Shown: positions 5,300 through 34,700 of the stretch, piece after piece | Layout of the letters: every line of letters begins with the position of its first letter | Position numbering within the stretch: the first letter of the stretch is position 1 | DNA from: Ranitomeya imitator | Lineage: Eukaryota | Assembly (NCBI RefSeq): GCF_032444005.1 | Contig: NC_091282.1 | Location: 360,468,001 to 360,532,000, forward strand | DNA: 64,000 bases | Direction: 5' to 3' | The notes under the pieces: generated by a model | What the model was told of the DNA's origin: nothing | The model's database searches: none | The model's input: only the letters and a program-made list of their open reading frames with translations | Made by a program: the position numbers and the translations under genes

Positions 5300-6231
5300 A
5301 AGGGTTTATTTTAATTCCGATATTTTGGTCCCATTGACTTGCATTGGGATCGGGTATCGGTATCGGCGATATCCGATATTTTTTGAATATCGGCCGATCC
5401 AAACCGATACCGATACTTTCCGATATCGGAAGGTATCGCTCAACACTAGTGTTGAGCATTCCGATACCGCAAGTATCGGGTATCGGCCGATACTTGCGGT
5501 ATCGGAATTCCGATACCGAGATCCGATATTTTTGTGATATCGGGTATCGGTATCGGAAGTGTAAAATAAAGAATTAAAATAAAAAATATTGTTATATTCA
5601 CCTCTCCGGCGGCCCCTGGACATCAGCGGGAGGATCCGGCGTCCGGCACGGCTTCTTTCTTCAAAATGCGCGCCTTCAGGACCTGTGGAATGACGTCCCG
5701 GCTTCTGATTGGTCGCGTGCCGCCCATGTGACCGCCACGCGACCAATCAGAAGCCGCGACGTCATTCCTCAGCTAAAGTCCTAGAATGAGCGCCTTCTAG
5801 GACCTGAGGAATGACGTCGCGGCTTCTGATTGGTCGCGTGGCGGTCACATGGGCGGCACGCGACCAATCAGAAGCCGGGACGTCATTCCACAGGTCCTGA
5901 AGGCGCGCATTTTGAAGAAAGAAGCCGTGCCGGACGCCGGATCCTCCCGCTGATGTCCAGGGGCCGCCGGAGAGGTGAATATAACAATATTTTTTATTTT
6001 AATTCTTTATTTTACACTTTAATATGGATCCCAGGGCCTGAAGGAGAGTTTCCTCTCCTTCAGACCCTGGGATCCATGAGGATACATTCCGATACTTGAT
6101 GTCCCATTGACTTGTATTGGTATCGGATATCGGTATCGGCGATATCCGATATTTTTCGGGTATCGGCCGATACTATCCGATACCGATACTTTCAAGTATC
6201 GGACGGTATCGCTCAACACTACTCAACACTA
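5300..6231. mobile_element. Right terminus of a larger hAT-type element (element A), split by MITE B; probably extends left through the array
   Basis: Subterminal block 5320-5446 (GTCCCATTGACTTG...GATATCCGATA...GTATCGCTCAACAC) resembles the right end of MITE B. Removing B and one TSD copy restores the terminus GTATCGCTCAACACTA ending at 6231, directly against Gypsy pol. Confidence 0.7.
5447..6221. mobile_element. Non-autonomous hAT-type MITE (element B) with 8-bp TSD
   Basis: TIRs are TAGTGTTGAGC (5447) and GCTCAACACTA (6221). The TSD CTCAACAC lies at 5439-5446 and 6222-6229. There is an internal ~215-bp inverted repeat (about 5557-5772 and 5803-6019). An 8-bp TSD with TAG termini is typical of hAT. 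Confidence 0.88.
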
Positions 6232-6934
6232 GTCATTAATGAAGATCATGATTCAGTCCTGGCCGGACACCCTGGAGGTAAAGTTATTACGGACCTTCAC
6301 ACTCGGCGTTTTTGGTGGTCTGGGGTAAATCATGATGTACAGGAATAAGTCGCTGCCTGCTGTGTGTGTGTGTGTTCCAAGACCACTCATACTCGCCCGT
6401 CTGGGTCTCTCCAACCTCTGGAGATTCCCAGTAGACCTTGGACCCATTTGCCAATAGACTTCATCACTGACTTACCGGTTTCTGAGGGTAATACAGTTAT
6501 TTTAGTCGTAGTTGACAGATTTAGCAAGATGTCACATTTTATTGCCCTTCCAGCGTTACCTAATGCCAAGACTCTGGCATAGATCTTTATCAAGGAGGTT
6601 GTGAGATTACATGGTGTTCCTTCAGATATTGTGTCAGACCGTGGGGTGCAGTTTATTTCTAAGTTTTGGAGGGCTTTTTGCAGTCGGCTGGGGATTCATT
6701 TGTCATTTTCTTCAGCTTTTCATCCTCAATCTAATGGTCAAACAGAATGTATAAATCAAAATCTTGAAACTTATCTTAGGTGTTTCATTTCAGAAAATCA
6801 GGAGGACTGGGTTAAGTACTTACCGTTGGCAGAGTTTGCAATAAACAACGGTACTCATGAATCCACTGGTAAGTCCCCGCTTTTCGGGGCATATGGTTTT
6901 CATCTTCAATTCAGTTCATTTAATAGGAAGGATT
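6232..6934 (+). pseudogene. Decayed Ty3/Gypsy integrase, 5' part (Gypsy-X)
   Basis: Translates to VLAGHPGG...RRFWW (zinc-binding region), [14 protein letters not shown]...VVVDRFSKM and IVSDRGVQFISKFW...SSAFHPQSNGQTE, with in-frame stops. Confidence 0.9.
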
Positions 6935-8301
6935 TTATTCAATAGTAAAAGAATAAAAACTGAAAATGTAGGCCCCTTAAAAAATAGTGAGGAAAGAATG
7001 GTTGTAGATGACGAGGAAAAAGCTAACATATTAAACACCTTCTTCTCCACGGTATTCACGGTGGAAAATGAAATGCTAGGTGAAATCCCAAGAAACAATG
7101 AAAACCCTATATTAAGGGTCACCAATCTAACCCAAGAAGAGGTGCGAAACCGGCTAAATAAGATTAAAATAGATAAATCTCCGGGTCCGGATGGCATACA
7201 CCCACGAGTACTAAGAGAACTAAGTAATGTAATAGATAAACCATTATTTCTTATTTTTAGTGACTCTATAGCGACAGGGTCTGTTCCGCAGGACTGGCGC
7301 ATAGCAAATGTGGTGCCAATATTCAAAAAGGGCTCTAAAAGTGAACCTGGAAATTATAGGCCAGTAAGTCTAACCTCTATTGTTGGTAAAATATTTGAAG
7401 GGTTTCTGAGGGATGTTATTCTGGATTATCTCAATGAGAATAACTGTTTAACTCCATATCAGCATGGGTTTATGAGAAATCGCTCCTGTCAAACCAATCT
7501 AATCAGTTTTTATGAAGAGGTAAGCTATAGGCTGGACCACGGTGAGTCATTGGACGTGGTATATCTCGATTTTTCCAAAGCGTTTGATACCGTGCCGCAC
7601 AAGAGGTTGGTACACAAAATGAGAATGCTTGGTCTGGGGGAAAATGTGTGTAAATGGGTTAGTAACTGGCTTAGTGATAGAAAGCAGAGGGTGGTTATAA
7701 ATGGTATAGTCTCTAACTGGGTCGCTGTGACCAGTGGGGTACCGCAGGGGTCAGTATTGGGACCTGTTCTCTTCAACATATTCATTAATGATCTGGTAGA
7801 AGGTTTACACAGTAAAATATCGATATTTGCAGATGATACAAAACTATGTAAAGCAGTTAATACAAGAGAAGATAGTATTCTGCTACAGATGGATCTGGAT
7901 AAGTTGGAAACTTGGGCTGAAAGGTGGCAGATGAGGTTTAACAATGATAAATGTAAGGTTATACACATGGGAAGAGGGAATCAATATCACCATTACACAC
8001 TGAACGGGAAACCACTGGGTAAATCTGACAGGGAGAAGGACTTGGGGATCCTAGTTAATGATAAACTTACCTGGAGCAGCCAGTGCCAGGCAGCAGCTGC
8101 CAAGGCAAACAGGATCATGGGGTGCATTAAAAGAGGTCTGGATACACATGATGAGAGCATTATACTGCCTCTGTACAAATCCCTAGTTAGACCGCACATG
8201 GAGTACTGTGTCCAGTTTTGGGCACCGGTGCTCAGGAAGGATATAATGGAACTAGAGAGAGTACAAAGGAGGGCAACAAAATTAATAAAGGGGATGGGAG
8301 A
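6935..8301 (+). mobile_element. 5'-truncated CR1 LINE (RT region), left part; interrupted by Gypsy-Y
   Basis: RT motifs KSPGPDGI, YRPVSLTS, YLDFSKAFDTV, GVPQGSVLGP and FADD. It is near-identical to the minus-strand copy at 31666-35868 and continues at 13998. Confidence 0.95.
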
Positions 8302-9050
8302 TGTTATGGCTGGCAATCAGGCAACACAGCGTGCAGTAATCAGCGCACATACAGAGATCTGGCAATAACCAAAAACAATAGGACGAGCTCTGAGACGTGG
8401 AATCTCTGTAGACTGCAGTACCTGATCTATCCTCACACAACTATAAGCAGCAGTGGATTGCGCCTATAACTACCTATGCAACTCGGCACTGCCTGAGGAG
8501 CTGACTAGCCTGAAGATAGAAATACAAGCCTGACTTACCTCAGAGAAATACCCCAAAGGAATAGGCAGCCCCCCACATATAATGACTGTTAGCAAGATGA
8601 AAAGACAAACGTAGGAATGAAATAGATTCAGCAAAGTGAGGCCCGATATTCTAGACAGAGCGAGGATAGCAAAGAGAACTATGCAGTCTACAAAAAACCC
8701 TAAAACGAAAACCACGCAAAGGGGCAAAAAGACCCACCGTGCCGAACTAACAGCACGGCGGTGCACCCCTTTGCTTCTCAGAGCTTCCAGCAAAAGTTAA
8801 TAGCAAGCTGGACAGAAAAAAACAGAAAACAAACTAGAAGCACTTATCTAGCAGAGCAGCAGGCCCAAGGAAAGATGCAGTAGCTCAGATCCAACACTGG
8901 AACATTGACAAGGAGCAAGGAAGACAGACTCAGGTGGAGCTAAATAGCAAGGCAGCCAACGAGCTCACCAAAACACCTGAGGGAGGAAGCCCAGAGACTG
9001 CAATACCACTTGTGACCACAGAAGTGAACTCAGCCACAGAATTCACAACA
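8302..9050 (-). repeat. 3' LTR of Gypsy-Y (749 bp)
   Basis: TG...CA ends. By eye it differs from the 5' LTR by two substitutions and one A-run indel. Confidence 0.95.
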
Positions 9051-12000
9051 GTACCCCCCCCTTGAGGAGGGGTCACCGAACCCTCACCAGAACCCCCAGG
9101 CCGACCAGGATGAGCCACATGAAAGGCACGAACAAGATCTGGGGCATGGACATCAGAGGCAAAAACCCAGGAATTATCTTCCTGAGCATAACCCTTCCAT
9201 TTGACCAGATACTGGAGTTTCCGTCTAGAGACACGAGAATCCAAAATCTTCTCCACAATATACTCCAATTCCCCCTCCACCAAAACAGGGGCAGGAGGCT
9301 CCACAGATGGAACCATAGGTGCCACGTATCTCCTCAACAACGACCTATGGAATACATTATGTATGGAAAAGGAGTCTGGGAGGGTCAGACGAAAAGACAC
9401 CGGATTGAGAATCTCAGAAATCCTATACGGACCAATAAAACGAGGTTTAAATTTAGGAGAGGAAACCTTCATAGGAATATGACGAGAAGATAACCAAACC
9501 AGATCCCCAACACGAAGTCGGGGTCCCACACGGCGTCTGCGATTAGCGAAAAGCTGAGCCTTCTCCTGGGACAAGGTCAAATTGTCCACCACCTGAGTCC
9601 AGATCTGCTGCAACCTGTCCACCACAGAATCCACACCAGGACAGTCCGAAGACTCAACCTGTCCTGAAGAGAAACGAGGATGGAACCCAGAATTGCAGAA
9701 AAATGGAGAGACCAAGGTAGCCGAGCTGGCCCGATTATTAAGGGCGAACTCAGCCAACGGCAAAAATGACACCCAATCATCCTGGTCAGCGGAAACAAAA
9801 CATCTCAGATATGTTTCCAAGGTCTGATTGGTTCGTTCGGTCTGGCCATTAGTCTGAGGATGGAAGGCCGAGGAGAAAGATAGGTCAATGCCCATCCTAC
9901 CACAAAAGGCTCGCCAGAACCTCGAGACAAACTGGGAACCTCTGTCAGAAACAATATTCTCAGGAATGCCATGTAAACGAACCACATGCTGGAAGAACAA
10001 AGGCACCAAATCAGAGGAGGAAGGCAATTTAACCAAGGGCACCAGATGGACCATTTTAGAAAAGCGATCACAGACCACCCAAATGACCGACATTTTTTGA
10101 GAAACGGGAAGGTCAGAAATGAAATCCATCGAAATATGTGTCCAAGGCCTCTTCGGGACCGGCAAGGGCAAAAGCAACCCACTGGCACGTGAACAGCAGG
10201 GCTTAGCCCTAGCACAAATTCCACAGGACTGCACAAAAGCACGCACATCCCGTGACAGAGATGGCCACCAGAAGGATCTAGCAACCAACTCCCTGGTACC
10301 AAAGATTCCTGGATGACCGGCCAGCACCGAACAATGAAGTTCAGAGATAACTTTACTAGTCCACCTATCAGGGACGAACAGTTTCTCGGCCGGACAACGA
10401 TCAGGTTTATTAGCCTGAAATTTCTGCAACACTCTCCGCAAATCAGGGGAGATGGCAGACACAATGACTCCTTCCTTGAGGATACTCGCCGGCTCAGATA
10501 ACCCCGGAGAGTCGGGCACAAAACTCCTAGACAGAGCATCCGCCTTCACATTTTTAGAGCCCGGAAGGTATGAAATCACAAAATCAAAACGAGCAAAAAA
10601 TAACGACCAACGGGCCTGTCTAGGATTCAAGCGCTTGGCAGACTCAAGATAAGTAAGGTTCTTATGATCAGTCAAAACCACCACGCGATGCTTAGCACCC
10701 TCAAGCCAATGACGCCACTCCTCGAATGCCCACTTCATGGCCAGCAACTCTCGGTTGCCCACATCATAATTACGCTCAGCAGCAGAAAATTTCCTGGAAA
10801 AGAAAGCACATGGTTTGAACACTGAGCAACCAGAACCTCTCTGTGACAAAACCGCCCCTGCACCAATCTCAGAAGCATCAACCTCGACCTGGAACGGAAG
10901 AGAAACATCAGGTTGACACAACACAGGGGCACAGCAAAAACGACGCTTCAACTCCTGAAAAGCTTCCACGGCAGCAGAAGACCAATTAACCAAATCAGCA
11001 CCCTTCTTGGTCAAATCGGTCAATGGTCTGGCAATGCTAGAAAAATTACAGATGAAGCGACGATAAAAATTAGCAAAGCCCAGGAATTTCTGCAGACTTT
11101 TTAGAGATGTCGGCTGAGTCCAATCCTGGATGGCCTGAACCTTAACCGGATCCATCTCGATAGTAGAAGGGGAAAAGATGAACCCCAAAAATGAAACTTT
11201 CTGCACACCGAAGAGACACTTTGATCCCTTCACGAACAAGGAATTAGCACGCAGTACCTGGAAAACCATTCTGACTTGCTTCACATGAGACTCCCAATCA
11301 TCTGAGAAGATCAAAATGTCATCCAAGTAAACAATCAAGAATTTATCCAGATACTCACGGAAAATGTCATGCATAAAAGACTGAAAAACAGATGGAGCAT
11401 TGGCAAGTCCGAACGGCATCACCAGATACTCAAAATGACCCTCGGGCGTATTAAATGCCGTTTTCCATTCATCTCCCTGCCTGATTCTCACCAGATTATA
11501 CGCACCACGAAGATCTATCTTGGTGAACCAACTAGCCCCCTTAATCCGAGCAAACAAGTCAGAAATCAATGGCAAGGGATACTGAAACTTAACAGTGATC
11601 TTATTAAGAAGGCGGTAATCAATACACGGTCTTAGCGAACCATCCTTCTTGGCTACAAAAAAGAACCCTGCTCCCAATGGTGACGACGATGGGCGAATAT
11701 GTCCCTTCTCCAGGGACTCCTTCACATAACTGCGCATAGCGGTGTGTTCAGGTACGGACAAATTAAATAAGCGACCCTTAGGGAATTTACTACCAGGAAT
11801 CAAATCGATAGCACAATCACAATTCCTATGCGGAGGTAGGGCATCAGACTTGGACTCTTCAAATACATCCTGAAAGTCCGACAAGAACTCTGGGATGTCA
11901 GAAGGAATGGATGACGAAATAGACAAAAATGGAACATCACCATGTACTCCCTGACAACCCCAGCTGGTTACCGACATAGAGTTCCAATCCAATACTGGAT

Positions 12001-13225
12001 TATGGGTTTGTAGCCATGGCAACCCCAACACGACCACATCATGCAAATTATGCAGTACCAGAAAGCGAATAACTTCCTGATGTGCAGGAGCCATGCACAT
12101 GGTCAGCTGGGCCCAGTACTGAGGCTTATTCTTGGACAAAGGTGTAGCATCAATTCCTCTCAACGGAATAGGACACCGCAAAGGCTCCAAGAAAAATCCA
12201 CAACGTTTAGCATAATCCAAATCCATCAGATTCAGGGCAGCGCCTGAATCCACAAATGCCATGACAGAATACGATGACAAAGAGCACATTAAGGTAATGG
12301 ACAAAAGGAATTTGGACTGTACAGTACCAATAACGGCAGAGCTATCGAACCGCCTAGTGCGTTTAGGACAATTAGAAATAGCATGAGTAGAATCACCACA
12401 ATAGAAACACAGTCTGTTCAGACGTCTGTGTTCTTGCCGTTCTACTTTAGTCATAGTCCTGTCGCACTGCATAGGCTCAGGTTTACTCTCAGACAATACC
12501 GCCAGATGGTGCACAGATTTACGCTCGCGCAAGCGACGACCGATCTGAATGGCCAAGGACATAGACTCATTCAAACCAGCAGGCATAGGAAATCCCACCA
12601 TTACATCCTTAAGAGCTTCAGAGAGACCCTTTCTGAACAAAGCCGCTAGTGCAGATTCATTCCACAGAGTGAGTACTGACCACTTTCTAAATTTCTGACA
12701 ATATACTTCTACATCATCCTGACCCTGGCATAAAGCCAGCAGATTTTTCTCAGCCTGATCCACTGAATTAGGCTCATCGTAAAGCAATCCCAGCGCCTGG
12801 AAAAATGCATCAACATTACTCAATGCAGAATCTCCTGGTGCAAGAGAAAACGCCCAGTCCTGTGGGTCGCCGCGCAAAAAAGAAATAATAATCAAAACCT
12901 GTTGAATAGGATTACCAGAAGAATGAGGTTTCAAGGCCAAAAATAGCTTACAATTATTTCTGAAGCTCAGGATCTTAGTTCTGTCACCAAAAAACAAATC
13001 AGGAATCGGAATTCTTGGTTCTAGCATCGATTTCTGATCAATAGTATCTTGAATCTTTTGTACATTTACAACGAGATTATCCATTGAGGAGCACAGAGCC
13101 TGAATATCCATGTCCACAGCTGTGTCCTGAAGCACTCTAATGTCTAGGGGAAAAAAAAGACTGAAGACAGAGCTAAGAAAAAAAAATGATGTCAGGATTT
13201 CTTTTTTCCCTCTATTGGGAATCAT
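8930..13225 (-). CDS. Uninterrupted Gag-Pol polyprotein (gag, CCHC knuckle, protease, RT, RNase H, integrase, chromodomain), 1431 aa from the first ATG
   Basis: Motifs CFYCGDSTHAISNC, FVDSGA, YLDD, VDASEIGAGAVL...TDHKNL, HCSVLAGHPG...CGIC, DFISD...SDRG...QTE and EYIVEKILDSR...YLVKWKGYAQEDNSW. The first ATG is at 13225 and the next at 13111. The stop lies inside the 3' LTR. Confidence 0.95.
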   Translation of the reverse strand: MIPNRGKKEILTSFFFLSSVFSLFFPLDIRVLQDTAVDMDIQALCSSMDNLVVNVQKIQDTIDQKSMLEPRIPIPDLFFGDRTKILSFRNNCKLFLALKPHSSGNPIQQVLIIISFLRGDPQDWAFSLAPGDSALSNVDAFFQALGLLYDEPNSVDQAEKNLLALCQGQDDVEVYCQKFRKWSVLTLWNESALAALFRKGLSEALKDVMVGFPMPAGLNESMSLAIQIGRRLRERKSVHHLAVLSESKPEPMQCDRTMTKVERQEHRRLNRLCFYCGDSTHAISNCPKRTRRFDSSAVIGTVQSKFLLSITLMCSLSSYSVMAFVDSGAALNLMDLDYAKRCGFFLEPLRCPIPLRGIDATPLSKNKPQYWAQLTMCMAPAHQEVIRFLVLHNLHDVVVLGLPWLQTHNPVLDWNSMSVTSWGCQGVHGDVPFLSISSSIPSDIPEFLSDFQDVFEESKSDALPPHRNCDCAIDLIPGSKFPKGRLFNLSVPEHTAMRSYVKESLEKGHIRPSSSPLGAGFFFVAKKDGSLRPCIDYRLLNKITVKFQYPLPLISDLFARIKGASWFTKIDLRGAYNLVRIRQGDEWKTAFNTPEGHFEYLVMPFGLANAPSVFQSFMHDIFREYLDKFLIVYLDDILIFSDDWESHVKQVRMVFQVLRANSLFVKGSKCLFGVQKVSFLGFIFSPSTIEMDPVKVQAIQDWTQPTSLKSLQKFLGFANFYRRFICNFSSIARPLTDLTKKGADLVNWSSAAVEAFQELKRRFCCAPVLCQPDVSLPFQVEVDASEIGAGAVLSQRGSGCSVFKPCAFFSRKFSAAERNYDVGNRELLAMKWAFEEWRHWLEGAKHRVVVLTDHKNLTYLESAKRLNPRQARWSLFFARFDFVISYLPGSKNVKADALSRSFVPDSPGLSEPASILKEGVIVSAISPDLRRVLQKFQANKPDRCPAEKLFVPDRWTSKVISELHCSVLAGHPGIFGTRELVARSFWWPSLSRDVRAFVQSCGICARAKPCCSRASGLLLPLPVPKRPWTHISMDFISDLPVSQKMSVIWVVCDRFSKMVHLVPLVKLPSSSDLVPLFFQHVVRLHGIPENIVSDRGSQFVSRFWRAFCGRMGIDLSFSSAFHPQTNGQTERTNQTLETYLRCFVSADQDDWVSFLPLAEFALNNRASSATLVSPFFCNSGFHPRFSSGQVESSDCPGVDSVVDRLQQIWTQVVDNLTLSQEKAQLFANRRRRVGPRLRVGDLVWLSSRHIPMKVSSPKFKPRFIGPYRISEILNPVSFRLTLPDSFSIHNVFHRSLLRRYVAPMVPSVEPPAPVLVEGELEYIVEKILDSRVSRRKLQYLVKWKGYAQEDNSWVFASDVHAPDLVRAFHVAHPGRPGGSGEGSVTPPQGGGTVVNSVAEFTSVVTSGIAVSGLPPSGVLVSSLAALLFSST

Positions 13226-13243
13226 TGGTGTGGCTCCTTGTAC

Positions 13244-13991
13244 TGTTATGGCTGGCAATCAGGCAACACAGCGTGCAGTAATCAGCGCACATACAGAGAT
13301 CTGGCAATAACCAAAAACAATAGGACGAGCTCTGAGACGTGGAATCTCTGTAGACTGCAGTACCTGATCTATCCTCACACAACTATAAGCAGCAGTGGAT
13401 TGCGCCTATAACTACCTATGCAACTCGGCACTGCCTGAGGAGCTGACTAGCCTGAAGATAGAAATACAAGCCTGACTTACCTCAGAGAAATACCCCAAAG
13501 GAATAGGCAGCCCCCCACATATAATGACTGTTAGCAAGATGAAAAGACAAACGTAGGAATGAAATAGATTCAGCAAAGTGAGGCCCGATATTCTAGACAG
13601 AGCGAGGATAGCAAAGAGAACTATGCAGTCTACAAAAAACCCTAAAACGAAAACCACGCAAAGGGGCAAAAAGACCCACCGTGCCGAACTAACAGCACGG
13701 CGGTGCACCCCTTTGCTTCTCAGAGCTTCCAGCAAAAGTTAATAGCAAGCTGGACAGAAAAAACAGAAAACAAACTAGAAGCACTTATCTAGCAGAGCAG
13801 CAGGCCCAAGGAAAGATGCAGTAGCTCAGATCCAACACTGGAACATTGACAAGGAGCAAGGAAGACAGACTCAGGTGGAGCTAAATAGCAAGGCAGCCAA
13901 CGAGCTCACCAAAACACCTGAGGCAGGAAGCCCAGAGACTGCAATATCACTTGTGACCACAGAAGTGAACTCAGCCACAGAATTCACAACA
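13244..13991 (-). repeat. 5' LTR of Gypsy-Y (748 bp)
   Basis: TG...CA ends. A TATTTA box on the minus strand is at 13882-13887. Confidence 0.95.
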
Positions 13992-13997
13992 GGGAGA

Positions 13998-14460
13998 ACT
14001 ACAATACCCAGATAGATTAGGGAAATTAGGATTATTTAGTCTAGAAAAAAGACGACTGAGGGGCGATCTAATAACCATGTATAAGTATATAAGGGGACAA
14101 TACAAATATCTCGCTGAGGATCTGTTTATACCAAGGAAGGTGACGGGCACAAGGGGGCATTCTTTGCGTCTGGAGGAGAGAAGGTTTTTCCACCAACATA
14201 GAAGAGGATTCTTTACTGTTAGGGCAGTGAGAATCTGGAATTGCTTGCCGGAGGAGGTGGTGATGGCGAACTCAGTCGAGGGGTTCAAGAGAGGCCTGGA
14301 TGTCTTCCTGGAGCAGAACAATATTGTATCATACAATTATTAGGTTCTGTAGAAGGACGTAGATCTGGGTATTTATTATGATGGAATATAGGCTGAACTG
14401 GATGGACAAATGTCTTTTTTCGGCCTTACTAACTATGTTACTATGTTACTATGTTACTAT
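13998..14460 (+). mobile_element. CR1 LINE 3' end (continuation of 6935-8301)
   Basis: C-terminus ...KRRLRGDLITMYKY...WNCLPEEVV...SYNY*, followed by the 3' UTR and an (ACTATGTT)n tail. GATT occurs at both outer junctions (6931-6934 and 14461-14464). Confidence 0.93.
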
Positions 14461-17900: not shown

Positions 17901-18528
17901 AGTAACATAGTAAAATAGTAACATAGTTTTTAAGGTTGAAGGAAGACTTTAAGTCCATCTAGTTCAACCCATATCCTAACTTAACATGCCCTAACATGTT
18001 GATCCAGAGGAAGGCAAAAAAAAACCCATGTGGCAAACAGAAAGCTCCACATTTTGGAAAAAAATTCCTTCCCGACTCCACATAAGGCAATCAGACTAGA
18101 TCCCTGGATCAATGCACTATGAAGTAATCTAGTGTATATAACCTGTAACATTATATTTTTCAAGAAAGGCATCCAGTCCCTTCTTAAATTTTAGTGATGA
18201 ATCACTAATTACAACATCATATGGCAGGGAATTCTCACTGCTCTTACAGTAAAGAATCTGCATCTGTTATTATGATTAAACCTTCTTTCGTCCAGACATA
18301 GAGGATTCCCCCTTGTCCCCATCTCAGGTCTATGTGTAAAAAGATCATTAGAAAGGTCTTTGTACTGTCCCCTCATGTATTTATACATTGTAATAAGATC
18401 ACCCCTTAGCCTTCATTTTTCCAAACTAAATAACCCCAAGTGTAATAACCTGTCTTGGTATTGCAGACCCCCCAGTACTCTAATAACCTTGGTTGCTCTG
18501 CACCCGCTCTAGTTCAGCTATGTCTAAA

Positions 18529-21500
18529 TGTGGCACCCCAGGAGTTTGGGTACCACAGTAGTGTTGCCTTCCTCTCGGGGAGTGTAGTGCTATGCCTGGA
18601 AACAAGAGGGATCTCTTTGGCAGGTGAATCACACACACAATACCTTCTGAATCCAGGCCAGGAGGGGGAGCTCAAAACACTGTTTTAGGGCAGCTTCCCT
18701 GGATAAAGATCTTGGTTTGGAGGAGCTAGTTTAGTCTGGATCAGACAGTCTGGAGAGCAGACAGGAAAGGAGCAGAGGAGAGATTTCGGGGTTCAAGGAG
18801 GCTACAAGTGGGGCTCTGAGGAGCCAAAATGCATAAACCGGGTACTGGGAGCCCAAGGCTAGAGTGGAAATGTAGGATATCTAGTAGAACCGGAGGGTAC
18901 AGAACAATACTACCCAAATTAAGCCTGTGGTACAGCAGCACCCTGGAGCCTGGAGTCACCGTGCAGAGACCCCAGAAGGAACAGCTCAAGCTGCCTACCA
19001 TACAGGTACCTGTCCCAGTACAGGGGAAAGATCCAGGACTGTTGTGAATTCTGTGGCAGAGCTCCCTTAATCCGAGCAAACAAATCAGATAACAATGGCA
19101 AGGGGTACTGAAATTTAACCATGATCTTATTTAGAAGGCGGTAATCTATACAAGGTCTCAGTGAACCATCCTTCTTGGCTACAAAAAAGAACCCTGCTCC
19201 TAATGGCGACGATGACAGGCGAATATGCCCCTTCTCCAAAGACTCCTTCACATAACTCCGCATAGCGGCGTGCTCAGGCACAGATAAATTAAACAGTCGA
19301 CCTTTTGGGAATTTACTACCAGGAATTAAATCGATAGCACAATCACAATCCCTATGCGGAGGTAGGGTATCGGACTTGGGCTCATCAAATAAATCCCGGT
19401 AATCAGACAAGAACTCAGGAACCTCAGAAGGGGTGGATGACGAAATATTCAGAAATGGGACATCACCATGTACCCCCTGACAACCCCAGCTGGACACAGA
19501 CATGGATTTCCAATCTAATACTGGATTATGGACTTGTAGCCATGGCAACCCCAACACGACCACATCATGCAGATTATGCAACACCAGAAAGCGAATAACC
19601 TCCTGATGTGCAGGAGCCATGCACATGGTCAGCTGGGTCCAGTACTGAGGTTTATTCTTGGCCAAAGGCGTAGCATCAATTCCTCTCAATGGAATAGGAC
19701 ACTGCAAGGGCTCCAAGAAAAACCCACAACGCCTAGCATACTCCAAGTCCATCAAATTCAGAGCAGCGCCTGAGTCGACAAATGCCATGACAGAATACGA
19801 TGACAAAGAGCAGATCAAGGTAACAGACAGAAGAAATTTTTACTGTACCGTACCAATGGTGGCAGACCTAGTGAACCGCTTAGTGCGCTTAGGACAATCA
19901 GAGATAGCATGAGTGGAATCACCACAGTAGAAACACAGCCCATTCAGACGTCTGTGTTCTTTCCGTTCAACTCTGGTCAAAGTCCTATCGCACTGCATAG
20001 GCTCAGGTTTAAGCTCAGGTAATACCGCCAAATGGTGCACAGATTGACGCTCGCGCAAGCGTCCACCGATCTCAATAGCCAAAGACATAGACTCATTCAG
20101 ACCAGCAGGCATGGGAAATCCCACCATGACATCCTTAAGGGCTTCAGAGAGACCTTTTCTGAAAATAGCTGCGAGCGCACCTTCATTCCACTGAGTGAGC
20201 ACGGACCACTTTCTAAATTTCTGACAATATACCTCTATTTCATCCTGACCCTGACACAGAGCCAGCAAATTCTTCTCTTCCTGATCCACAGAATTAGGCT
20301 CATCGTACAGCAATCCGAGCGCCAGGAAAATGCATCGATATTACTTAATGCAGGATCTCCTGACGCAAGAGAAAATGCCCAGTCCTGAGGGTCGCCACGC
20401 AAAAAAGAAATAACGATCCTAACTTGTTGAACTGGGTCACCAGAGGAGCGAGGTTTCAAAGCCAGAAATAGTTTACAATTATTTTTGAAACGCAGAAATT
20501 TAGTTCTATCTCCAAAAAACAAATCAGGAATAGGAATTCTCGGTTCTAACATAGAATTCTGAACCACAAAGTCTTGAATACTTTGTACTCTTGCCGTGAG
20601 CTGATCCACACATGAAGACAGACCTTTAATGTCCATTGCTACACCTGTGTCCTGAACCACCCAAATGTCTAGGGGAAAAAAAAGGCAAAACACAGTGCAA
20701 AGAAAAAAAATGGTCTCAGAACTTCTTTTTTCCCTCTATTGGGAATCATTAGCACTTAGGGCCTCCAGTACTGTTATGAAAGGTAATTCAGTACCACAAT
20801 GGACATAGAGGTCAGCGCACATACAGTGACCTGACAATAACCCAAAAAACAAGAACGAGCTCTGAGACGTGGGAACTCTGTTGACCGCAATCCCTAATCC
20901 TCTCCAACCACACTAAAGGCAGCCGTGGATTGCGCCTAACGCTCCCTATGCAACTCGGCACGGCCTGAGAAACTAGCTAGCCTGAAGATAGAAAATAAGC
21001 CTACCTTGCCTCAGAGAAATACCCCAAAGGAAAAGGCAGCCCCCACATATAATGACTGTGAGTTAAGATGAAAAGACAAACGTAGAGATGAAATAGATTT
21101 AGCAAAGTGAGGCCCAACTTTCTGAACAGAGCGAGGATAGGAAAGGTAACTTTGCGGTCAACACAAAACCCTACAAAAACCACGCAAAGGGGGCAAAAAG
21201 ACCATCCGTACCGAACTAACGGCACGGAGGTACACCCTCTGCGTCCCAGAGCTTCCAGCAAGCAGAAAAAAACAAATTGACAAGCTGGACAGAAAAAAAC
21301 AGCAAACAAATAGCAAAGAGGAACTTAGCTATGCAGAGCAGCAGGCCACAAGAACGATCCAGGAGGAAACAGGTCCAATACTAGAACATTGACTGGAGGC
21401 CAGGATCAAAGCACTAGGTGGAGTTAAATAGAGCAGCACCTAACGACATCACCACATCACCTGAGGAAGGAAACTCAGAAGCCGCAGTACCACTTTCTTC

Positions 21501-22019
21501 CACCAACGGAAGCTTACAGAGAGAACCAGCCGAAGTACCACTTGTGACCACAGGAGGGAGCTCTGCCACAGAATTCACAACACAGGACCCTGTTAGGACA
21601 TTACAGACAGCAAGGGACTATAGCAAGCATGCAGTGTAAGGCTCCCAACCTGACTTGCCAAGGGGATTCCACTTGTTTCCAGGCTGCCTGGACTCCTAAT
21701 GTACCTGTTGCCGGTACTCTGGACTGTGGCCTGCCAACTACAGGTAAAGACTTTACAGCTTGTGTCCTTTTCTCATTGACCGGTCACCATAATTGCTGCA
21801 ACAACATCCCTCAGAGGACCCCTTTAAAGCAGCATCGGTTCCCCTATTGACCGAACACAACTGGTGGCGTCACGACAGACTTATTCCCAATTCCCCTTTA
21901 AAGACCGTTCCCTTTTACAGTGAGTCTCAAGGCCACGGACTGGGTCACAGCCACAGTGACATACCCTTTAATAGCCAACTGGACCTGGTACCAAGTACCC
22001 TGCCCTGGTGGGTGACTCA
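18529..22019. repeat. Solo LTR-like element (~0.94 kb after removing the Gypsy-Z insert)
   Basis: Starts TGTGGCACCCC and ends GGTGACTCA. It interrupts CR1. A TSD is not clean (TAAA/TATA). Confidence 0.6.
19040..21582 (-). mobile_element. Truncated Gypsy-Z derivative: one full LTR, gag, protease, partial RT, capped by an inverted 28-bp LTR end
   Basis: Full LTR at 20772-21582. 19040-19067 is the exact reverse complement of 21555-21582. TSD CAGGAC lies at 19034-19039 and 21583-21588. Gag/pol is homologous to Gypsy-Y, with a frameshift and a stop. Confidence 0.92.
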
Positions 22020-22554
22020 TATACACCGGAGACCAGAACTGTACACAGTATTCTAAGTGTGGTCACACAAGTGAATTGTATAAAGGTAAAATTTTGTTCT
22101 CCTCATGAGCATCTATGCCTCTTTTAATGCATCCCATTATTTTATTTGCCTTTGCAGCAGCTGCCTGACACTGGCCACTAAATGTGAGTTTGTCATCCAC
22201 TCATACCCCAGGTCTTTTTCATTGACAGTTTTGCCCAGTGTTTTACAATTAAGCACATGGTTATGCATCTTATTTCTTCTGCCCAAGTGCATGACCTTAC
22301 ATTTATCCCCATTAAAGCTCATTTGCCATTTATCAGCCCAAACTTCTAGTTTACATAAATCATCCTGTAATATAAAATTGTCCTCCTCTGTATTGATTAC
22401 TCTGCAGAGTTTAGTGTCATCTGCAAAAATTGGAATTCTACTCTGTATGCCCCTTACAAGGTCATTAATAAATATGTTAAAAAAAGCGGGCCTAATACTG
22501 ACTCCTGTGGTACCCCACTGCTATCCACGACCCAGTCCGAGTGTGCTCCATTAA

Positions 22555-24870: not shown

Positions 24871-26414
24871 AGGGAGACACATATATGTATATATATTATT
24901 ACTTCATACAGCGCGATATAGCAGAAAGCCGGTAATTCAATTACCGGCTTTTGCTTTCTCCTTCCTAAACCCGACATGATATGAGACATGGTTACATACA
25001 GTAAACCATCTCATATCCCCATTTTTTTGCATATTCCACACTACTAATGTTATTAGTGTGTATATGCAAAATTTGGCCGTTCTAGCTAGTAAAATAAGGG
25101 GTTAAATGGCGGAAAAAATTGACGTGGGCTCCCGCACAATTTTCTCTGCCAGAGTAGTAAAGCCAGTGACTGAGGGCAGATATTAATAGCCTGGAGAGGG
25201 TCCACGGTTATTGGCCCCCCCCCCCCCCTGGCTAAAAACACCTGCCCCCAGCCACCCCAGAAAAGGCACATCTGGAAGATGCACCTATTCTGGCACTTGG
25301 CCACTCTCTTCCCATTCCCGTGTAGCGGTGGGATATGGGGTAATGAAGGGTTAATGTCACCTTGCTATTGTAAGGTGACATTAAGCCTAATTAATAATGG
25401 AGAGGCGTCAATTATGACACCTATCCATTATTAATCCAATACTAGTAAAAGGTTAAAAAAACACACACACATTATTAAAAAATAATTTATTGAAAAAATC
25501 CCACCTATATTTAGCTTCATTTGCGGTGAGGCGCCCTCTGCTGGCTGTTCCTAGATCGTGGGAACTATCCTAGAAAGCTCCCTTGCTCGAGTTCATATGA
25601 GGACAACCAGCAGAGGGCGCCCTCTTATGATCTCGAGCAAGGGAGCTTTCTAGGATAGTTCCCACGATCTAGGAACAGCCAGCAGAGGGCGCCTCACCGC
25701 AAATGAAGCTAAATATAGGTCACTGACCTATATTTAGCTTCATTCGCCGGGGTATTGCAGACATGAGCAGCCTGCATTAGCGGAGCTCGTGTCTGCAAAA
25801 TATTTTAACCCCTTCAGATGGATCTACATCGTTGGACCTTACAGATCCTCGGAAGGTATGTATATTGTTGGTTTATTTTTATTTTTTAATTTACAGATCG
25901 AGGGTCTTCAGTGAGTGGATTGAGAGTAGAATAAATTAATACAACAGCCTTTGTGATTTTTTCAATAAATTATTTTTTAATAATGTGTGTGTGTTGTTTT
26001 TTTTTAACCCTTTACTAGTATTGGATTAATAATGGATAGGTGTCATAATTGACGCCTCTCCATTATTAATTAGGCTTAATGTCACCTTACAATAGCAAGG
26101 TGACATTAACCCTTCATTACCCCTTATCCCACCGCTACACGGGAATTCCTCGCAAGTCACACTGCTGGTCCGTGTGTAATCCGTAATTTTGGGGCTTCCA
26201 TTGACTTTCATTGACGTTTTATTTGCGCAATATGGTGACAAACGCAGCATGCTGCGATTTTCTACGGCCGTAGAAAGCCGTATAATACGGATCAGTTTAA
26301 TACGGCAGATAGGAGCAGGGGCATAGAGAATAATTGTGCCGTATTTTTTGCGAGTTTTACGGACGTAGTTTCTGCGCTCTTACGTCCGTAAAACTCTCAA
26401 GTGTGACGCCAGCC
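24585..26414. mobile_element. PIF/Harbinger-type non-autonomous element with internal palindromes and (TA)n
   Basis: TIR GGCCGGCGTCACAC...GTGTGACGCCAGCC with TAA TSD. Nested inverted repeats span about 25330-26135. Confidence 0.85.
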
Positions 26415-27702: not shown

Positions 27703-29075
27703 TGTCACGCTGTGAAGGTCTTCGGTAAGGAAGGGTGGCCCCCTAACTATCCCTGTCCTGGGGGTACTCTTGAGGGTAGAGAGGCCCAAGTCTCTGATCT
27801 TGCTATGCTCCTGATGTGCCTTTTAGCTGTCCCCTCCCCCTCCGAGGAGGTCTGGTACAGATATGTTAGTGTATAAACACGCAAGACAAAAATTGATAAC
27901 AAAAAGCAACTGACATACAAAAACACTCATCAAGTGTAGGGAGGAATATAGGGAAGAATAGGCATGTACTAATCAAATGGCAATAGAATAATGGAGAAAA
28001 CGTATACCCTAAAAGAAAATACAACAATCTCCAGCAGCAAACTACGAATTCCAACGTCAGCACATCAACTCCAGCAAGCCAGGAAGTAAACTTTCACAGG
28101 AGGGGATGAAAAGGTCTGGCCAGGTTTTATAGAGAGATGAAATGAGCAGGTCAGGAGCAGCTGTGAGGTGGAGATGCATGTCTCCAAACAGCATACAAAG
28201 AGCCATTAACCTCTTCAGCACCAAAGGAAAAGAAGTCCATTTAATATGAGCAACAAAATACAGAGGCTGAATGGTACACCTGCGATTCCCCATAAGTAAT
28301 GATTGCCTAAAGGTACCGTCACACTTTAGCGACGCTGCAGCGATACCGACAACGATCCGGATCACTGCAGTGTCGCTGTTTGGTCGCTGGAGAGCTGTCA
28401 CACAGACAGCTCTCCAGTGACCAACGATCCCGAGGTCCCCGGTAACCAGGGTAAACATCAGGTTACTAAGCGCAGGGCCGCGCTTAGTAACCCGATGTTT
28501 ACCCTGGTTACCATCGTTAAAGTAAAAAAAACAAACGCTACATACTTACCTACCGCTGTCTGTCCCCGGCGCTCTGCTTCTCTGGTCTGGCTGTGAGCAC
28601 AGCGGCAGGAAAGCAGAGCAGTGACGTCACCGCTCTGCTTTCTGGCTGCCCGCCGCTCACAGCCAGACCAGAGAAGCAGAGCGCCGGGGACAGACAGCGG
28701 TAGGTAAGTATGTAGCGTTTGTTTTTTTTACTTTAACGATGGTAACCAGGGTAAACATCGGGTTACTAAGCGCGGCCCTGCGCTTAGTAACCCGATGTTT
28801 ACCCTGGTTACCAGCGAAGACATCGCTGAATCGGCATCACACACGCCGATTCAGCGATGTCAGCGGGACCTCAACGATCAAAAAATGGCCCAGGCCATTC
28901 CGACACGAGCAGCGATCTCACAGCAGGGGCCTGATCGCTGCTACGTGTCACACATAGCGAGATCGCTACTGAGATCGCTGTTGCGTCACAAAACTTGTGA
29001 CTCAGCAGCGATCTCGCTAGCGATCTCGCTATGTGTGACGGGGCCTTAACACCAGATCTCCCAGAGGGCATAACA
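27703..29075 (-). repeat. Probable 5' LTR of that Gypsy, split by a MITE
   Basis: TGTCACG...CATAACA ends, upstream of gag on the minus strand. Boundaries are approximate. Confidence 0.5.
28311..29046. mobile_element. Harbinger-type palindromic MITE
   Basis: AGGTACCGTCACAC...GTGTGACGGGGCCT with TAA on both sides. Long internal inverted repeats lie at about 28437-28810. Confidence 0.8.
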
Positions 29076-31775: not shown

Positions 31776-34700
31776 CTAATAATTGTATGATACAATATTG
31801 TTCTGCTCCAGGAAGACATCCAGGCCTCTCTTGAACCCCTCGACTGAGTTCGCCATCACCACCTCCTCAGGCAAGCAATTCCAGATTCTCACTGCCCTAA
31901 CAGTAAAGAATCCTCTTCTATGTTGGTGGAAAAACCTTCTCTCCTCCAGACGCAAAGAATGCCCCCTTGTGCCCGTCACCTTCCTTGGTATAAACAGATC
32001 CTCAGCGAGATATTTGTATTGTCCCCTTATATACTTATACATGGTTATTAGATCGCCCCTCAGTCGTCTTTTTTCTAGACTAAATAATCCTAATTTCGCT
32101 AATCTATCTGGGTATTGTAGTTCTCCCATCCCCTTTATTAATTTTGTTGCCCTCCTTTGTACTCTCTCTAGTTCCATTATATCCTTCCTGAGCACCGGTG
32201 CCCAAAACTGGACACAGTACTCCATGTGCGGTCTAACTAGGGATTTGTACAGAGGCAGTATAATGCTCTCATCATGTGTATCCAGACCTCTTTTAATGCA
32301 CCCCATGATCCTGTTTGCCTTGGCAGCTGCTGCCTGGCACTGGCTGCTCCAGGTAAGTTTATCATTAACTAGGATCCCCAAGTCCTTCTCCCTGTCAGAT
32401 TTACCCAGTGGTTTCCCGTTCAGTGTGTAATGGTGATATTGATTCCCTCTTCCCATGTGTATAACCTTACATTTATCATTGTTAAACCTCATCTGCCACC
32501 TTTCAGCCCAAGTTTCCAACTTATCCAGATCCATCTGTAGCAGAATACTATCTTCTCTTGTATTAACTGCTTTACATAGTTTTGTATCATCTGCAAATAT
32601 CGATATTTTACTGTGTAAACCTTCTACCAGATCATTAATGAATATGTTGAAGAGAACAGGTCCCAATACTGACCCCTGCGGTACCCCACTGGTCACAGCG
32701 ACCCAGTTAGAGACTATACCATTTATAACCACCCTCTGCTTTCTATCACTAAGCCAGTTACTAACCCATTTACACACATTTTCCCCCAGACCAAGCATTC
32801 TCATTTTGTGTACCAACCTCTTGTGCGGCACGGTATCAAACGCTTTGGAAAAATCGAGATATACCACGTCCAATGACTCACCGTGGTCCAGTCTATAGCT
32901 TACCTCTTCATAAAAACTGATTAGATTGGTTTGACAGGAGCGATTTCTCATAAACCCATGCTGATATGGAGTTAAACAGTTATTCTCATTGAGATAATCC
33001 AGAATAACATCCCTCAGAAACCCTTCAAATATTTTACCAACAATAGAGGTTAGACTTACTGGCCTATAATTTCCAGGTTCACTTTTAGAGCCCTTTTTGA
33101 ATATTGGCACCACATTTGCTATGCGCCAGTCCTGCGGAACAGACCCTGTCGCTATAGAGTCACTAAAAATAAGAAATAATGGTTTATCTATTACATTACT
33201 TAGTTCTCTTAGTACTCGTGGGTGTATGCCATCCGGACCTGGAGATTTATCTATTTTAATCTTATTTAGCCGGTTTCGCACCTCTTCTTGGGTTATATTG
33301 GTGACTCTTAATATAGGGTTTTCATTGTTTCTTGGGATTTCACCTAGCATTTCATTTTCCACCGTGAATACCGTGGAGAAGAAGGTGTTTAATATGTTAG
33401 CTTTTTCCTCGTCATCTACAACCATTCTTTCCTCACTATTTTTTAAGGGGCCTACATTTTCAGTTTTTATTCTTTTACTATTGATATAGTTGAAGAACAG
33501 TTTGGGATTAGTTTTACTCTCCTTAGCAATGTGCTTCTCTGTTTCCTTTTTGGCAGCTTTAATTAGTTTTTTAGATAAAGTATTTTTCTCCCTATAGTTT
33601 TTTAGAGCTTCAGTGGTGCCATCCTGCTTTAGTAGTGCAAATGCTTTCTTTTTACTGTTAATTGCCTGCCTTACTTCTTTGTTTAGCCACATTGGGTTTT
33701 TCCTATTTCTAGTCCTTTTATTCCCACAAGGTATAAACCGCTTACACTGCCTATTTAGGATGTTCTTAAACATTTCCCATTTATTATCTGTATTCTCATT
33801 TCTGAGGATATTGTCCCAGTCTACCAGATTAAGGGCATCTCTAAGCTGTTCAAACTTTGCCTTCCTAAAGTTCAATGTTTTTGTGACTCCCTGACAAGTC
33901 CCCCTAGTGAAAGACAGGTGAAACTGCACAATATTGTGGTCGCTATTTCCTAAATGCCCAACCACCTGCAGATTTGTTATTCTGTCAGGTCTATTAGATA
34001 GTATTAGGTCTAAAAGTGCTGCTCCTCTGGTTGGATTCTGCACCAATTGTGAAAGATAATTTTTCTTGGTTATTAGCAGAAACCTGTTGCCTTTATGGGT
34101 TTCACAGGTTTCTGTTTCCCAGTTAATATCCGGGTAGTTAAAGTCCCCCATAACCAGGACCTCATTATGGGTTGCAGCTTCATCTATCTGCTTTAGAAGT
34201 AGACTTTCCATGGTTTCTGTTATATTTGGGGGTTTGTAACAGACCCCAATGAGAATTTTGTTACCATTTTTCCTTCCATGAATTTCAACCCATATGGACT
34301 CGACATCCTCATTCCCTTCGCTAATATCCTCCCTTAAAGTGGACTTTAGACAAGACTTTACATAGAGACAAACCCCTCCTCCTCTCCGATTTTTACGATC
34401 CTTTCTAAACAGACTGTAACCCTGTAAGTTAACTGCCCAGTCATAGCTTTCATCTAACCATGTCTCGGTTATTCCCACTATGTCAAAGTTACCTGTAGAT
34501 ATTTCTGCTTCTAGTTCTTCCATCTTGTTTGTCAGGCTTCTGGCGTTTGCGAGCATGCAGTTTAGAGGATTTTGTTTTGTTCCAATCTCCTCACTGTGGA
34601 TTGTTTTAGAAATGTTCTTACCTCCCTTCTGAGTATGTTTTCCTGGGTCGTCTTTGTTCGAGTCTAATGTTTTTCTTCCCGTCCCCTCTTCTTCTAGTTT

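Follow-up and report, generated by a model that had tools for sequence, protein, structure and literature searches.

At positions 19034-21588 of the window, the 64-kb stretch of Ranitomeya imitator DNA analyzed here, lies an insert of ~2.5 kb whose LTR, PBS, gag, protease and RT start are all found on the minus strand (Table 1). The two ends of the insert are 28-nt arms that are inverted and 100% complementary to each other, and a 6-bp direct repeat, CAGGAC, abuts both of them. An initial annotation of this DNA had described a perfect 28-bp inverted repeat with a clean 6-bp TSD, and we reproduced it in both coordinates and letters. Within the only complete LTR, U3 starts at 21582, a TATTTAA box occupies 21424-21430 and U5 ends with ...CATAACA at 20772; R is presumed to start near 21401. 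The gag ATG is located at 20636, and the coding sequence, interrupted by a frameshift near 20330 and an in-frame stop at 19840-19842, breaks off in RT just short of motif A (at ..LFARIKGA), so that the RT domain is cut after its first ~40 residues. When the intact 1442-aa open reading frame of the relative Gypsy-Y was used as a tblastn query, aa 1-152 and aa 151-575 aligned to the insert in two frames, the second block at 88% identity; the aspartyl-protease match is weak. Missing from the insert are the PPT, the 3' R/U5, the rest of RT, RNase H and IN. A canonical element would have two direct LTRs (U3-R-U5, with TG...CA ends). Because this insert instead has one LTR and 28 nt of inverted U3, we regard it as a derivative and not as a canonical Ty3/Gypsy member.

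Table 1. Features of the insert and of its reference relative, in window coordinates.
Feature	Position	Strand	Basis or remark
Left TSD copy, CAGGAC	19034-19039	.	Flush repeat; empty-site joint 19033->21583
Inverted cap, first 28 nt of U3 (left arm)	19040-19067	+	Opposite orientation to the rest of the element
Inner-junction 8-nt overlap	19060-19067	.	AGCTCCCT on the + strand, AGGGAGCT in element sense
Truncated gag-pol (gag, zinc knuckle, protease, RT start)	19060-20636	-	tblastn against the Gypsy-Y ORF
PBS, sense reading GTACTGGAGGCC	20760-20771	-	Complementary to LTR motif 21392-21401
Sole complete LTR, 811 bp, in 5' LTR position	20772-21582	-	Alignment with both Gypsy-Y LTRs
Native U3 start (right arm)	21555-21582	-	100% complementary to the left arm
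Right TSD copy, CAGGAC	21583-21588	.	Flush repeat; empty-site joint
Gypsy-Y, full-length chromovirus (LTRs 8302-9050 and 13244-13991)	8302-13991	-	83% identical to the insert

Gypsy-Y provides the reference for interpreting this structure. Its LTRs are identical to each other at 746 of 749 positions, and its gag-pol frame is intact and contains the domains RVT_1, RT_RNaseH, Integrase_H2C2, rve, SH3_Tf2-1 and Chromo, in the Ty3/Gypsy chromovirus order gag-PR-RT-RNase H-IN with a C-terminal chromodomain. The insert retains only aa 1-575 of this polyprotein (gag, PR and the RT start). Gypsy-Y is flanked by a 6-bp TSD (GGGAGA/TCTCCC), which is checked by an uninterrupted paralogue of its site at ~32118-32123 in the window that reads ..GTAGTTCTCCCATCCCC... 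The integrase of this family therefore leaves a 6-bp TSD at both the insert (CAGGAC) and Gypsy-Y (TCTCCC). Both att ends of the family have TGTT.TGAA in common, which makes two U3 ends a plausible integrase substrate. In both elements the PBS is also complementary to the start of R in the same transcript. In the insert, ACTGGAGGCC pairs with GGCCTCCAGT, sited 22 nt past TATTTAA, and in Gypsy-Y the PBS ACAAGGAGC pairs with GCTCCTTGT, a pair that covaries with that of the insert. Based on this PBS/R complementarity, which is the signature of self-priming, we propose that the insert and Gypsy-Y probably belong among the Tf1/sushi-like chromoviruses. Copies of the family are extremely numerous, and the region consists of nested repeats.

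The identity of the left arm is central to any account of the insert. All three LTRs in the window start with TGTTGTGAATTCTGTGGC and end with CATAACA. The left arm matches the U3 start at 28/28 positions and the reverse complement of the insert's own U5 end at just 14/28, in agreement with the earlier suggestion that the short copy is the start of U3, and its outer end falls exactly on the LTR terminus TG. A normal U5 end, as a plain internal deletion reaching the tip of the 3' LTR would leave, was rejected on the same comparison, given that U5 ends in ...CATAACA and matches at only 14/28. With up to three mismatches allowed, the 28-mer occurs four times in the window and not once in 100 shuffles; two of these matches lie beyond the insert and are the U3 starts of the Gypsy-Y LTRs. 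When the complete window was scanned for inverted pairs of at least 18 nt, only the insert arms had a 6-bp duplication flush with them. Folding the U3 start and the junction region as DNA gave nothing above shuffles.

Sites that resemble the target before insertion were found among contigs built from public sequencing runs of this frog (X1 and X2; Logan contigs of the runs average ~66 nt). Four contigs in X1 and three in X2 carry the 19033->21583 joint with a single CAGGAC; six letters at this joint are ambiguous, fitting either side, and the shorter side extends up to 76 nt. The empty-site piece listed, X1 record 4, is ~90% identical to the left flank. The contigs that join 19033 to 21583 are paralogous empty sites of a host repeat. 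That these paralogues run from 19033 straight into 21583 also led us to reject host-repeat sequence as the source of the arm. Both ends of the insert are precise LTR termini, set within a TSD that the paralogues hold once. A copy truncated by illegitimate recombination subsequent to its insertion would have lost one terminus and would have no flush TSD; here both termini are kept and the TSD is flush. From the family-length 6-bp TSD and the insert-free paralogues with one CAGGAC, it follows that a single integrase-mediated event placed a DNA with U3 at either end into the site, and the view of the locus as a single, properly integrated unit with U3 at each end is upheld. In the contigs of X17, a loose end, GGGGGGGT, before 19038 was considered as a second locus and rejected: it consists of the PPT (GGGGGGGGGTAC) and U3 of normal copies and is placed at 19038 because the flank happens to end in AC. 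An odd U3/U3 mini-joint with raised depth is also present in the run contigs.

The same evidence bears on whether the structure could be an artefact or a secondary rearrangement, that is, an assembly collapse in repeats or a truncated copy altered by inversion and deletion. We judge this very unlikely. The abundance of the family and the nesting of repeats in the region would favor such an error, and the inner junction (19067/19068) is bridged by no contig among the matches listed, which are few of ~190,000 pieces. However, neither an assembler nor a random rearrangement would place a 6-bp duplication, single in paralogues, directly next to an LTR terminus; an inverted duplication of the right junction predicts GTCCTG on the left, where CAGGAC is observed; and the nearest N-gaps are >27 kb off.

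The inner junction reads ...GGATTA/AGGGAGCT (slash, junction), and Gypsy-Y reads AGGGGGCT at the homologous position in pol; these readings, and the 7/8 microhomology between them, are as the initial annotation gave them. Since pol homology extends to 19060, 8 nt are common to pol and the cap. This overlap corresponds to U3 nt 21-28 and also to the pol codons K-G-A (Gypsy-Y aa 573-575), and mismatches bound it on either side. The Gypsy-Y codon GGG is replaced in the insert by the synonymous GGA. Normal pol copies in the run contigs depart from the insert at 19060 and continue in a Gypsy-Y-like manner.

We propose, with roughly even confidence, that the insert arose by one integrase-mediated insertion of an aberrant chromovirus cDNA whose two termini were both U3 attachment ends. 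Such a molecule would most simply arise if the plus strand, while still growing, switched template or folded back. The plus (sense) strand would have been synthesized through U3, R, U5, PBS, gag and protease into the RT start. At pol codons 573-575, its 3' end (...AGGGAGCT) would then have annealed to the complementary U3 nt 21-28 (AGCTCCCT), which lie close to the 5' end of plus-strand DNA; the partner could be the same strand or another one present in the particle. Extension of the paired 3' end by 20 nt would reach the natural 5' terminus of the template and so create the same 3' end as that of a normal minus strand. Synthesis running off a natural plus-strand 5' end would be expected to leave a cap that stops exactly at the LTR terminus, as this one does. 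The resulting double-stranded 2.5-kb molecule would present two U3 ends to integrase, which would insert both into a pre-existing repeat with the family's normal 6-bp stagger. The product would have been dead on arrival and has decayed since. A further step, which could be mutual priming with strand displacement or could be repair, would be needed to turn the switched strand into a blunt duplex.

It is plausible that the 8-nt overlap was used by reverse transcriptase in plus-strand synthesis. The overlap suits host microhomology-mediated end joining equally well, and host end joining, or a deletion inside a longer inverted structure, would yield an identical junction. That reverse transcriptase and not a host enzyme made the junction is our inference, as are the identity of the switching strand and the way in which its partner strand was made. 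One alternative is that the integrating U3/U3 molecule was longer, being a cDNA dimer inverted U5-to-U5 or else a long snap-back palindrome, and that a later microhomology-mediated chromosomal deletion left 28 bp, the unstable palindrome having lost its centre and nearly all of one arm. This sequence of events predicts the same flush U3 ends and TSD, and an 8-nt overlap is typical of such deletions. We nevertheless consider it rather unlikely: two events are required, one breakpoint must land only 28 bp from the terminus, and the second arm leaves no trace past 28 bp. It is also conceivable, if quite improbable, that the U3 ends of two cDNAs were synapsed by integrase and co-inserted, and that host end joining linked their trimmed distal parts at the 8-nt microhomology during integration. 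Retroviral particles carry two genomes, and co-insertion would give a normal TSD alongside two U3 ends, with an overlap compatible with alternative end joining. Against this, one molecule would have to lose ~5.6 kb and the other ~3 kb while both termini survived intact; the literature searched gave no in vivo precedent for such an event, and we know of none.

The insert differs from each of the known systems that it resembles. Our search, whose coverage of the literature was partial and probably left older J Virol papers on aberrant retroviral DNA outside, found no published description of an integrated U3/U3 LTR element. The 5' inversion of LINE-1 copies, which Ostertag and Kazazian reportedly attributed in 2001 to twin priming, is similar in that an inverted segment is joined at microhomology, all inside one TSD. 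L1 copies by target-primed reverse transcription, and its inversion arises at the target, whereas the insert has integrase att ends and a fixed 6-bp TSD. DIRS elements rely on a tyrosine recombinase and leave no TSD, and TIR transposons depend on a transposase and form families with common ends. Inverted terminal repeats are common to the insert, DIRS-like retroelements and TIR DNA transposons, but the relatives of the insert encode a DDE integrase and a chromodomain, and its TSD is present and has the length of the Gypsy family's.

Other parallels come from abnormal insertions of LTR elements and retroviruses. Complex LTR-retrotransposon insertions have been attributed to aberrant template switching in reverse transcription (Sabot & Schulman, 2007, PMC1950507; Zeng & Sun, 2018, bioRxiv 10.1101/452573). 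As proposed for the insert, an abnormal cDNA is made before integration and is inserted normally, with an intact TSD around a non-canonical element; those insertions are, however, direct LTR-internal-LTR-internal-LTR arrays with U3 and U5 ends, whereas the second end of the insert is an inverted U3 tip and its coding sequence stops within RT. Aberrant strand transfers also give rise to defective HIV-1 proviruses with asymmetric LTRs, internal deletions and inversions; these are likewise integrated fossils of strand-transfer errors with short-homology deletion junctions, and plus-strand errors have been proposed for them as well (PMC9278108; PMC12657518). These proviruses keep U3 and U5 ends, and neither PMC9278108 nor PMC12657518 reports U3/U3 termini such as those of the insert. 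A non-canonical provirus end is also seen in aberrant retroviral integrations where host enzymes join one of the ends, but there the normal short TSD is missing and the host DNA is rearranged (PMC5041404), whereas the TSD of the insert is normal and both of its ends are precise LTR termini.

The insert has the 28-bp perfect TIR and 6-bp TSD of a class II transposon or MITE, a likeness of structure only. No transposase is present in the insert, and its coding content is gag-pol. The initial annotation went further and spoke of conversion into a TIR-like element and, should the junction recur, of a route for mobilising such elements. We find no support for the first in functional terms, nor for the second, as the copy is decayed and defective, with the PPT, 3' R/U5, RT, RNase H and IN gone, and the 64-kb window contains no second copy of the junction. 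Metagenome contigs were blank for the junction and blank also for the normal U3 start used as a control, the collection being without the family, so that the blank for the junction carries no weight. A family of mobile TIR-bearing derivatives that spreads in capped form would fit the resemblance to a TIR element with TSD and the raised depth of the U3/U3 mini-joint; we give this idea almost no credence. Retroviral-type integrases are not known to excise integrated DNA, a transcript of the insert would be without PPT and 3' R, and the junction, seen once in the window, belongs to a decayed copy. We read the insert as a real fossil of a reverse-transcription accident, apparently dead, and not as a new kind of mobile element.

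Taken alone, the insert is one dead fossil without functional effect, and it would gain greater importance only if a genome-wide census revealed many independent U3/U3 insertions. If our reading is right, it offers natural in vivo evidence that an LTR-retroelement integrase performs normal concerted integration with two U3 ends, and that microhomology-guided strand switches late in plus-strand synthesis give integrable molecules. Copies with two U3 ends are easily mistaken by annotation pipelines for TIR elements or plain truncations. More speculatively, and with clear doubt on our part, U3/U3 insertions could be a recurrent and so far undescribed class of by-products of self-priming chromoviruses, in which plus strands fold back onto their own U3, through PBS/R complementarity or chance microhomology, and are inserted by integrase in vivo. 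If so, some of the LTR copies that are called "truncated" in large amphibian genomes would be such by-products, and TIR-like and fold-back repeats would be seeded by them.

The insert ends in two copies of the same LTR terminus. The 28 nt at 19040-19067 (TGTTGTGAATTCTGTGGCAGAGCTCCCT) are complementary to 21555-21582 at 28/28 positions, and CAGGAC stands flush on both sides, so that the perfect 28-bp inverted repeat with a 6-bp target-site duplication (TSD) described in the initial annotation is borne out. Because 28/28 positions of the left arm match the U3 start, against 14/28 for the complemented U5 end of the insert itself, the arm is identified as U3, not U5. With up to three mismatches allowed, the 28-mer has four matches in the window and none in 100 shuffles; the remaining two are the outer LTR ends of the neighbouring element Gypsy-Y. 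A scan of the entire window for inverted pairs with arms of at least 18 nt returned 23, and a flush 6-bp direct duplication was found only at this pair. Four further long, perfect or near-perfect inverted repeats (5557-6019, 25337-26123, 28461-28792 and 57604-59195, with arms of 216, 113, 138 and 33-58 nt) have no flush TSD and are fold-back-type in appearance.

Between these ends lies a truncated copy of an LTR retroelement, the LTR boundaries of which were fixed by aligning the window's three LTRs. Its full-length relative Gypsy-Y (8302-13991, minus strand) is 83% identical over 2.4 kb. The domains predicted in the intact 1442-aa ORF of Gypsy-Y (Retrotrans_gag, RVT_1, RNase H, integrase, Tf2-type SH3 and chromodomain) mark it as a chromovirus, and because this ORF is intact, the LTRs (one at 13244-13991) are identical at 746/749 positions and GGGAGA/TCTCCC flanks form a 6-bp TSD, Gypsy-Y is a young copy that may still be competent. 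The Gypsy-Y protein aligns to the insert as two pieces, residues 1-152 with 20786-20328 and residues 151-575 with 20334-19060 (88% identity), which places a frameshift near 20330; an in-frame stop is present at 19842-19840. The reading frame is truncated between ..LFARIKGA and SWFTKIDL, immediately ahead of RT motif A, and therefore RT, RNase H and IN are not encoded; the PPT and 3' LTR are absent too. In the comparison of insert and Gypsy-Y within the three-LTR alignment, the primer-binding site (PBS) and a motif 22 nt downstream of a TATA-like box covary, ACTGGAGGCC pairing with GGCCTCCAGT in the insert and ACAAGGAGC with GCTCCTTGT in Gypsy-Y. This covarying pair of PBS and presumed R start reads as the signature of Tf1/sushi-type self-priming.

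Features of the insert and of the repeats around it (window positions)
Feature	Position	Strand	Remarks
LTR, 811 bp	21582 to 20772	minus	starts TGTTGTG..., ends ...CATAACA
Primer-binding site GTACTGGAGGCC	20771-20760	minus	
PBS/presumed R-start complementarity in insert	20760-20771 with 21392-21401		
gag start ATG	20636	minus	then zinc knuckle, protease, beginning of RT
Boundary of pol and inverted 28 nt	19068/19067		
CAGGAC, left copy	19034-19039		directly outside left arm
CAGGAC, right copy	21583-21588		directly outside right arm
R copy 1	7716-8230 with 13999-14234		interrupted by Gypsy-Y
R copy 2	18231-18530 with 22024-22536		interrupted by repeat X, itself holding the U3/U3 insert
R copy 3	31885-32707		uninterrupted

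Three lines of sequence evidence argue that this U3/U3-ended DNA was put in by integrase, as one integration. The first is the length of the duplication. Gypsy-Y is located within the LINE-like repeat R (503-aa ORF with RVT_1, 6857-8368), and in an uninterrupted R copy (about 32050-32260) TCTCCC stands once (about 32118-32123), in the stretch ...GTAGTTCTCCCATCCCC...; together with the GGGAGA/TCTCCC flanks, this indicates that 6 bp is the TSD length of the insert's family. The second is the empty site. The immediate flanks of the insert (about 18530-19039 and 21589-22020) belong to repeat X, and when Logan contigs from two same-species runs (X1 and X2) of one sample, probably the source, were aligned to 18500-22000, four in X1 and three in X2 joined 19033 straight to 21583, with six letters fitting either side of the joint and a shorter side of up to 76 nt. 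Since the one joining contig listed (X1 record 4) differs from the left flank at 13 of 126 nt (~90% identity), these contigs are best read as paralogous X copies with one CAGGAC and without the insert. The third is orientation: the left flank reads CAGGAC, whereas GTCCTG would stand there had the right junction been duplicated in inverted orientation. Together, the family TSD, the 19033/21583 joint and the CAGGAC orientation rule out that the arm belongs to the host repeat, that two insertions occurred independently or that a simple rearrangement of the chromosome took place, and they support the earlier proposal of a normally integrated U3/U3-ended unit.

Repeat X (18500-18733, 21659-22000) is multi-copy, its summed contig depth exceeding the single-copy level by a factor of hundreds to thousands, and contains an internal inverted pair of 32 nt (18594-18625 and 21653-21684, 84%). 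X variants in another sample (X17) skip 19010-21632. The insertions of Gypsy-Y and X in two R copies lie within ~50 bp of the same R position, which could be a preferred target or coincidence.

At the inner junction, the pol homology reaches 19060, not 19068, and AGGGAGCT (sense) is therefore common to pol codons K-G-A and the complement of U3 nt 21-28, with mismatches bounding this 8-nt overlap on both sides. Gypsy-Y reads AGGGGGCT at the homologous position, and because its one difference (GGG for GGA) is synonymous, the overlap may well have been 8/8 in the true parent; the short microhomology first noted here holds. At 19060, contigs of ordinary pol copies part from the insert and go on, as Gypsy-Y does, with ATCTATCTTGGTGAACCAACT. 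An overlap of 8 nt, far above chance, points to a homology-guided join. An artefact or secondary rearrangement keeps a very slight probability because, among the contig pieces listed, none bridges 19067/19068. A different joint, of 19040-19064 to 21538 onward, occurs in one contig each of X1 and X2 (depth about 100-116 versus 10-23 for single-copy contigs); it consists of U3 nt 1-25 and then the reverse complement of U3 nt 1-45, and weakly suggests a ~70-nt hairpin-like U3/U3 mini-unit, its shorter side being only 25 nt.

The cap, as we call the inverted 28 nt, ends exactly at the LTR terminus. Judging from the boundaries of Gypsy-Y, where the PPT reads AAGGGGGGGGGTAC followed by TGTTG and the PBS side AACA followed by GTAC, linear cDNA probably has two additional bp (AC...GT), trimmed off by integrase, and copying a plus-strand 5' end to run-off would restore the normal ...CAACAGT-3' substrate. 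What we infer beyond this anatomy begins with the simplest origin, a plus-strand switch in reverse transcription, for and against which we find the balance even. The growing plus strand would stall or run off within RT, its last 8 nt would pair with nt 21-28 of U3 at a plus-strand 5' end, and an extension of 20 nt (or 22 nt, had the template two extra terminal bases) would reach that end. Completion of the duplex would follow, perhaps with a short nascent strong-stop DNA of the plus strand as partner in mutual priming, and integrase would then use two U3 ends, a credible substrate since the U3 and U5 tips of the family both have TGTT.TGAA. An identical scar would be left by a longer U3/U3 molecule (an inverted dimer or snap-back palindrome) from which a microhomology deletion removed the centre and one arm after integration, which we consider unlikely, or by integrase synapsing two cDNAs at their U3 ends, with the gap closed through host end joining, which we consider distinctly improbable. 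The template switch suggested in the initial annotation is plausible given the 8-nt overlap and the cap ending at the LTR terminus, but the specific reverse-transcription step is unproven.

The outcome is analogous to that of L1 twin priming, although that process works, and the L1 inversion arises, at the target. In plants, template switching before integration yields complex TSD-flanked LTR elements, but these are direct three-LTR arrays (PMC1950507; bioRxiv 10.1101/452573), whereas the insert has an inverted U3 cap. Asymmetric LTRs, short-homology deletions and the occasional inversion are known from HIV-1 proviruses, yet the reported forms retain one U3 and one U5 end (PMC9278108; PMC12657518), unlike the two U3 ends here. 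Where host enzymes join one end in an aberrant integration, the normal TSD is lost (PMC5041404); the insert retains its own, at 6 bp. In the literature searched, which gave partial coverage, we found no description of an integrated LTR element that ends in U3 on both sides.

The idea that the insert represents a mobile, TIR-like derivative fares less well. It has no cis or trans function required for further retrotransposition; retroviral-type integrases are not known to cut integrated DNA out again; and at many positions nearly all related contigs carry a different letter, in addition to the stop and frameshift. For these reasons its sequence gives no indication that it moves as a unit and marks it as functionally dead; the pol/cap junction occurs once in the 64-kb window. 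Metagenome contigs gave no match to this junction, but neither did they to the normal U3 start used as a control, so that this negative carries no weight. The insert is a real molecular fossil of aberrant retroelement cDNA, a variant within that known kind, normally integrated. As such it is cleanly documented, with its structure supported, the reverse-transcription step plausible and mobility unsupported.
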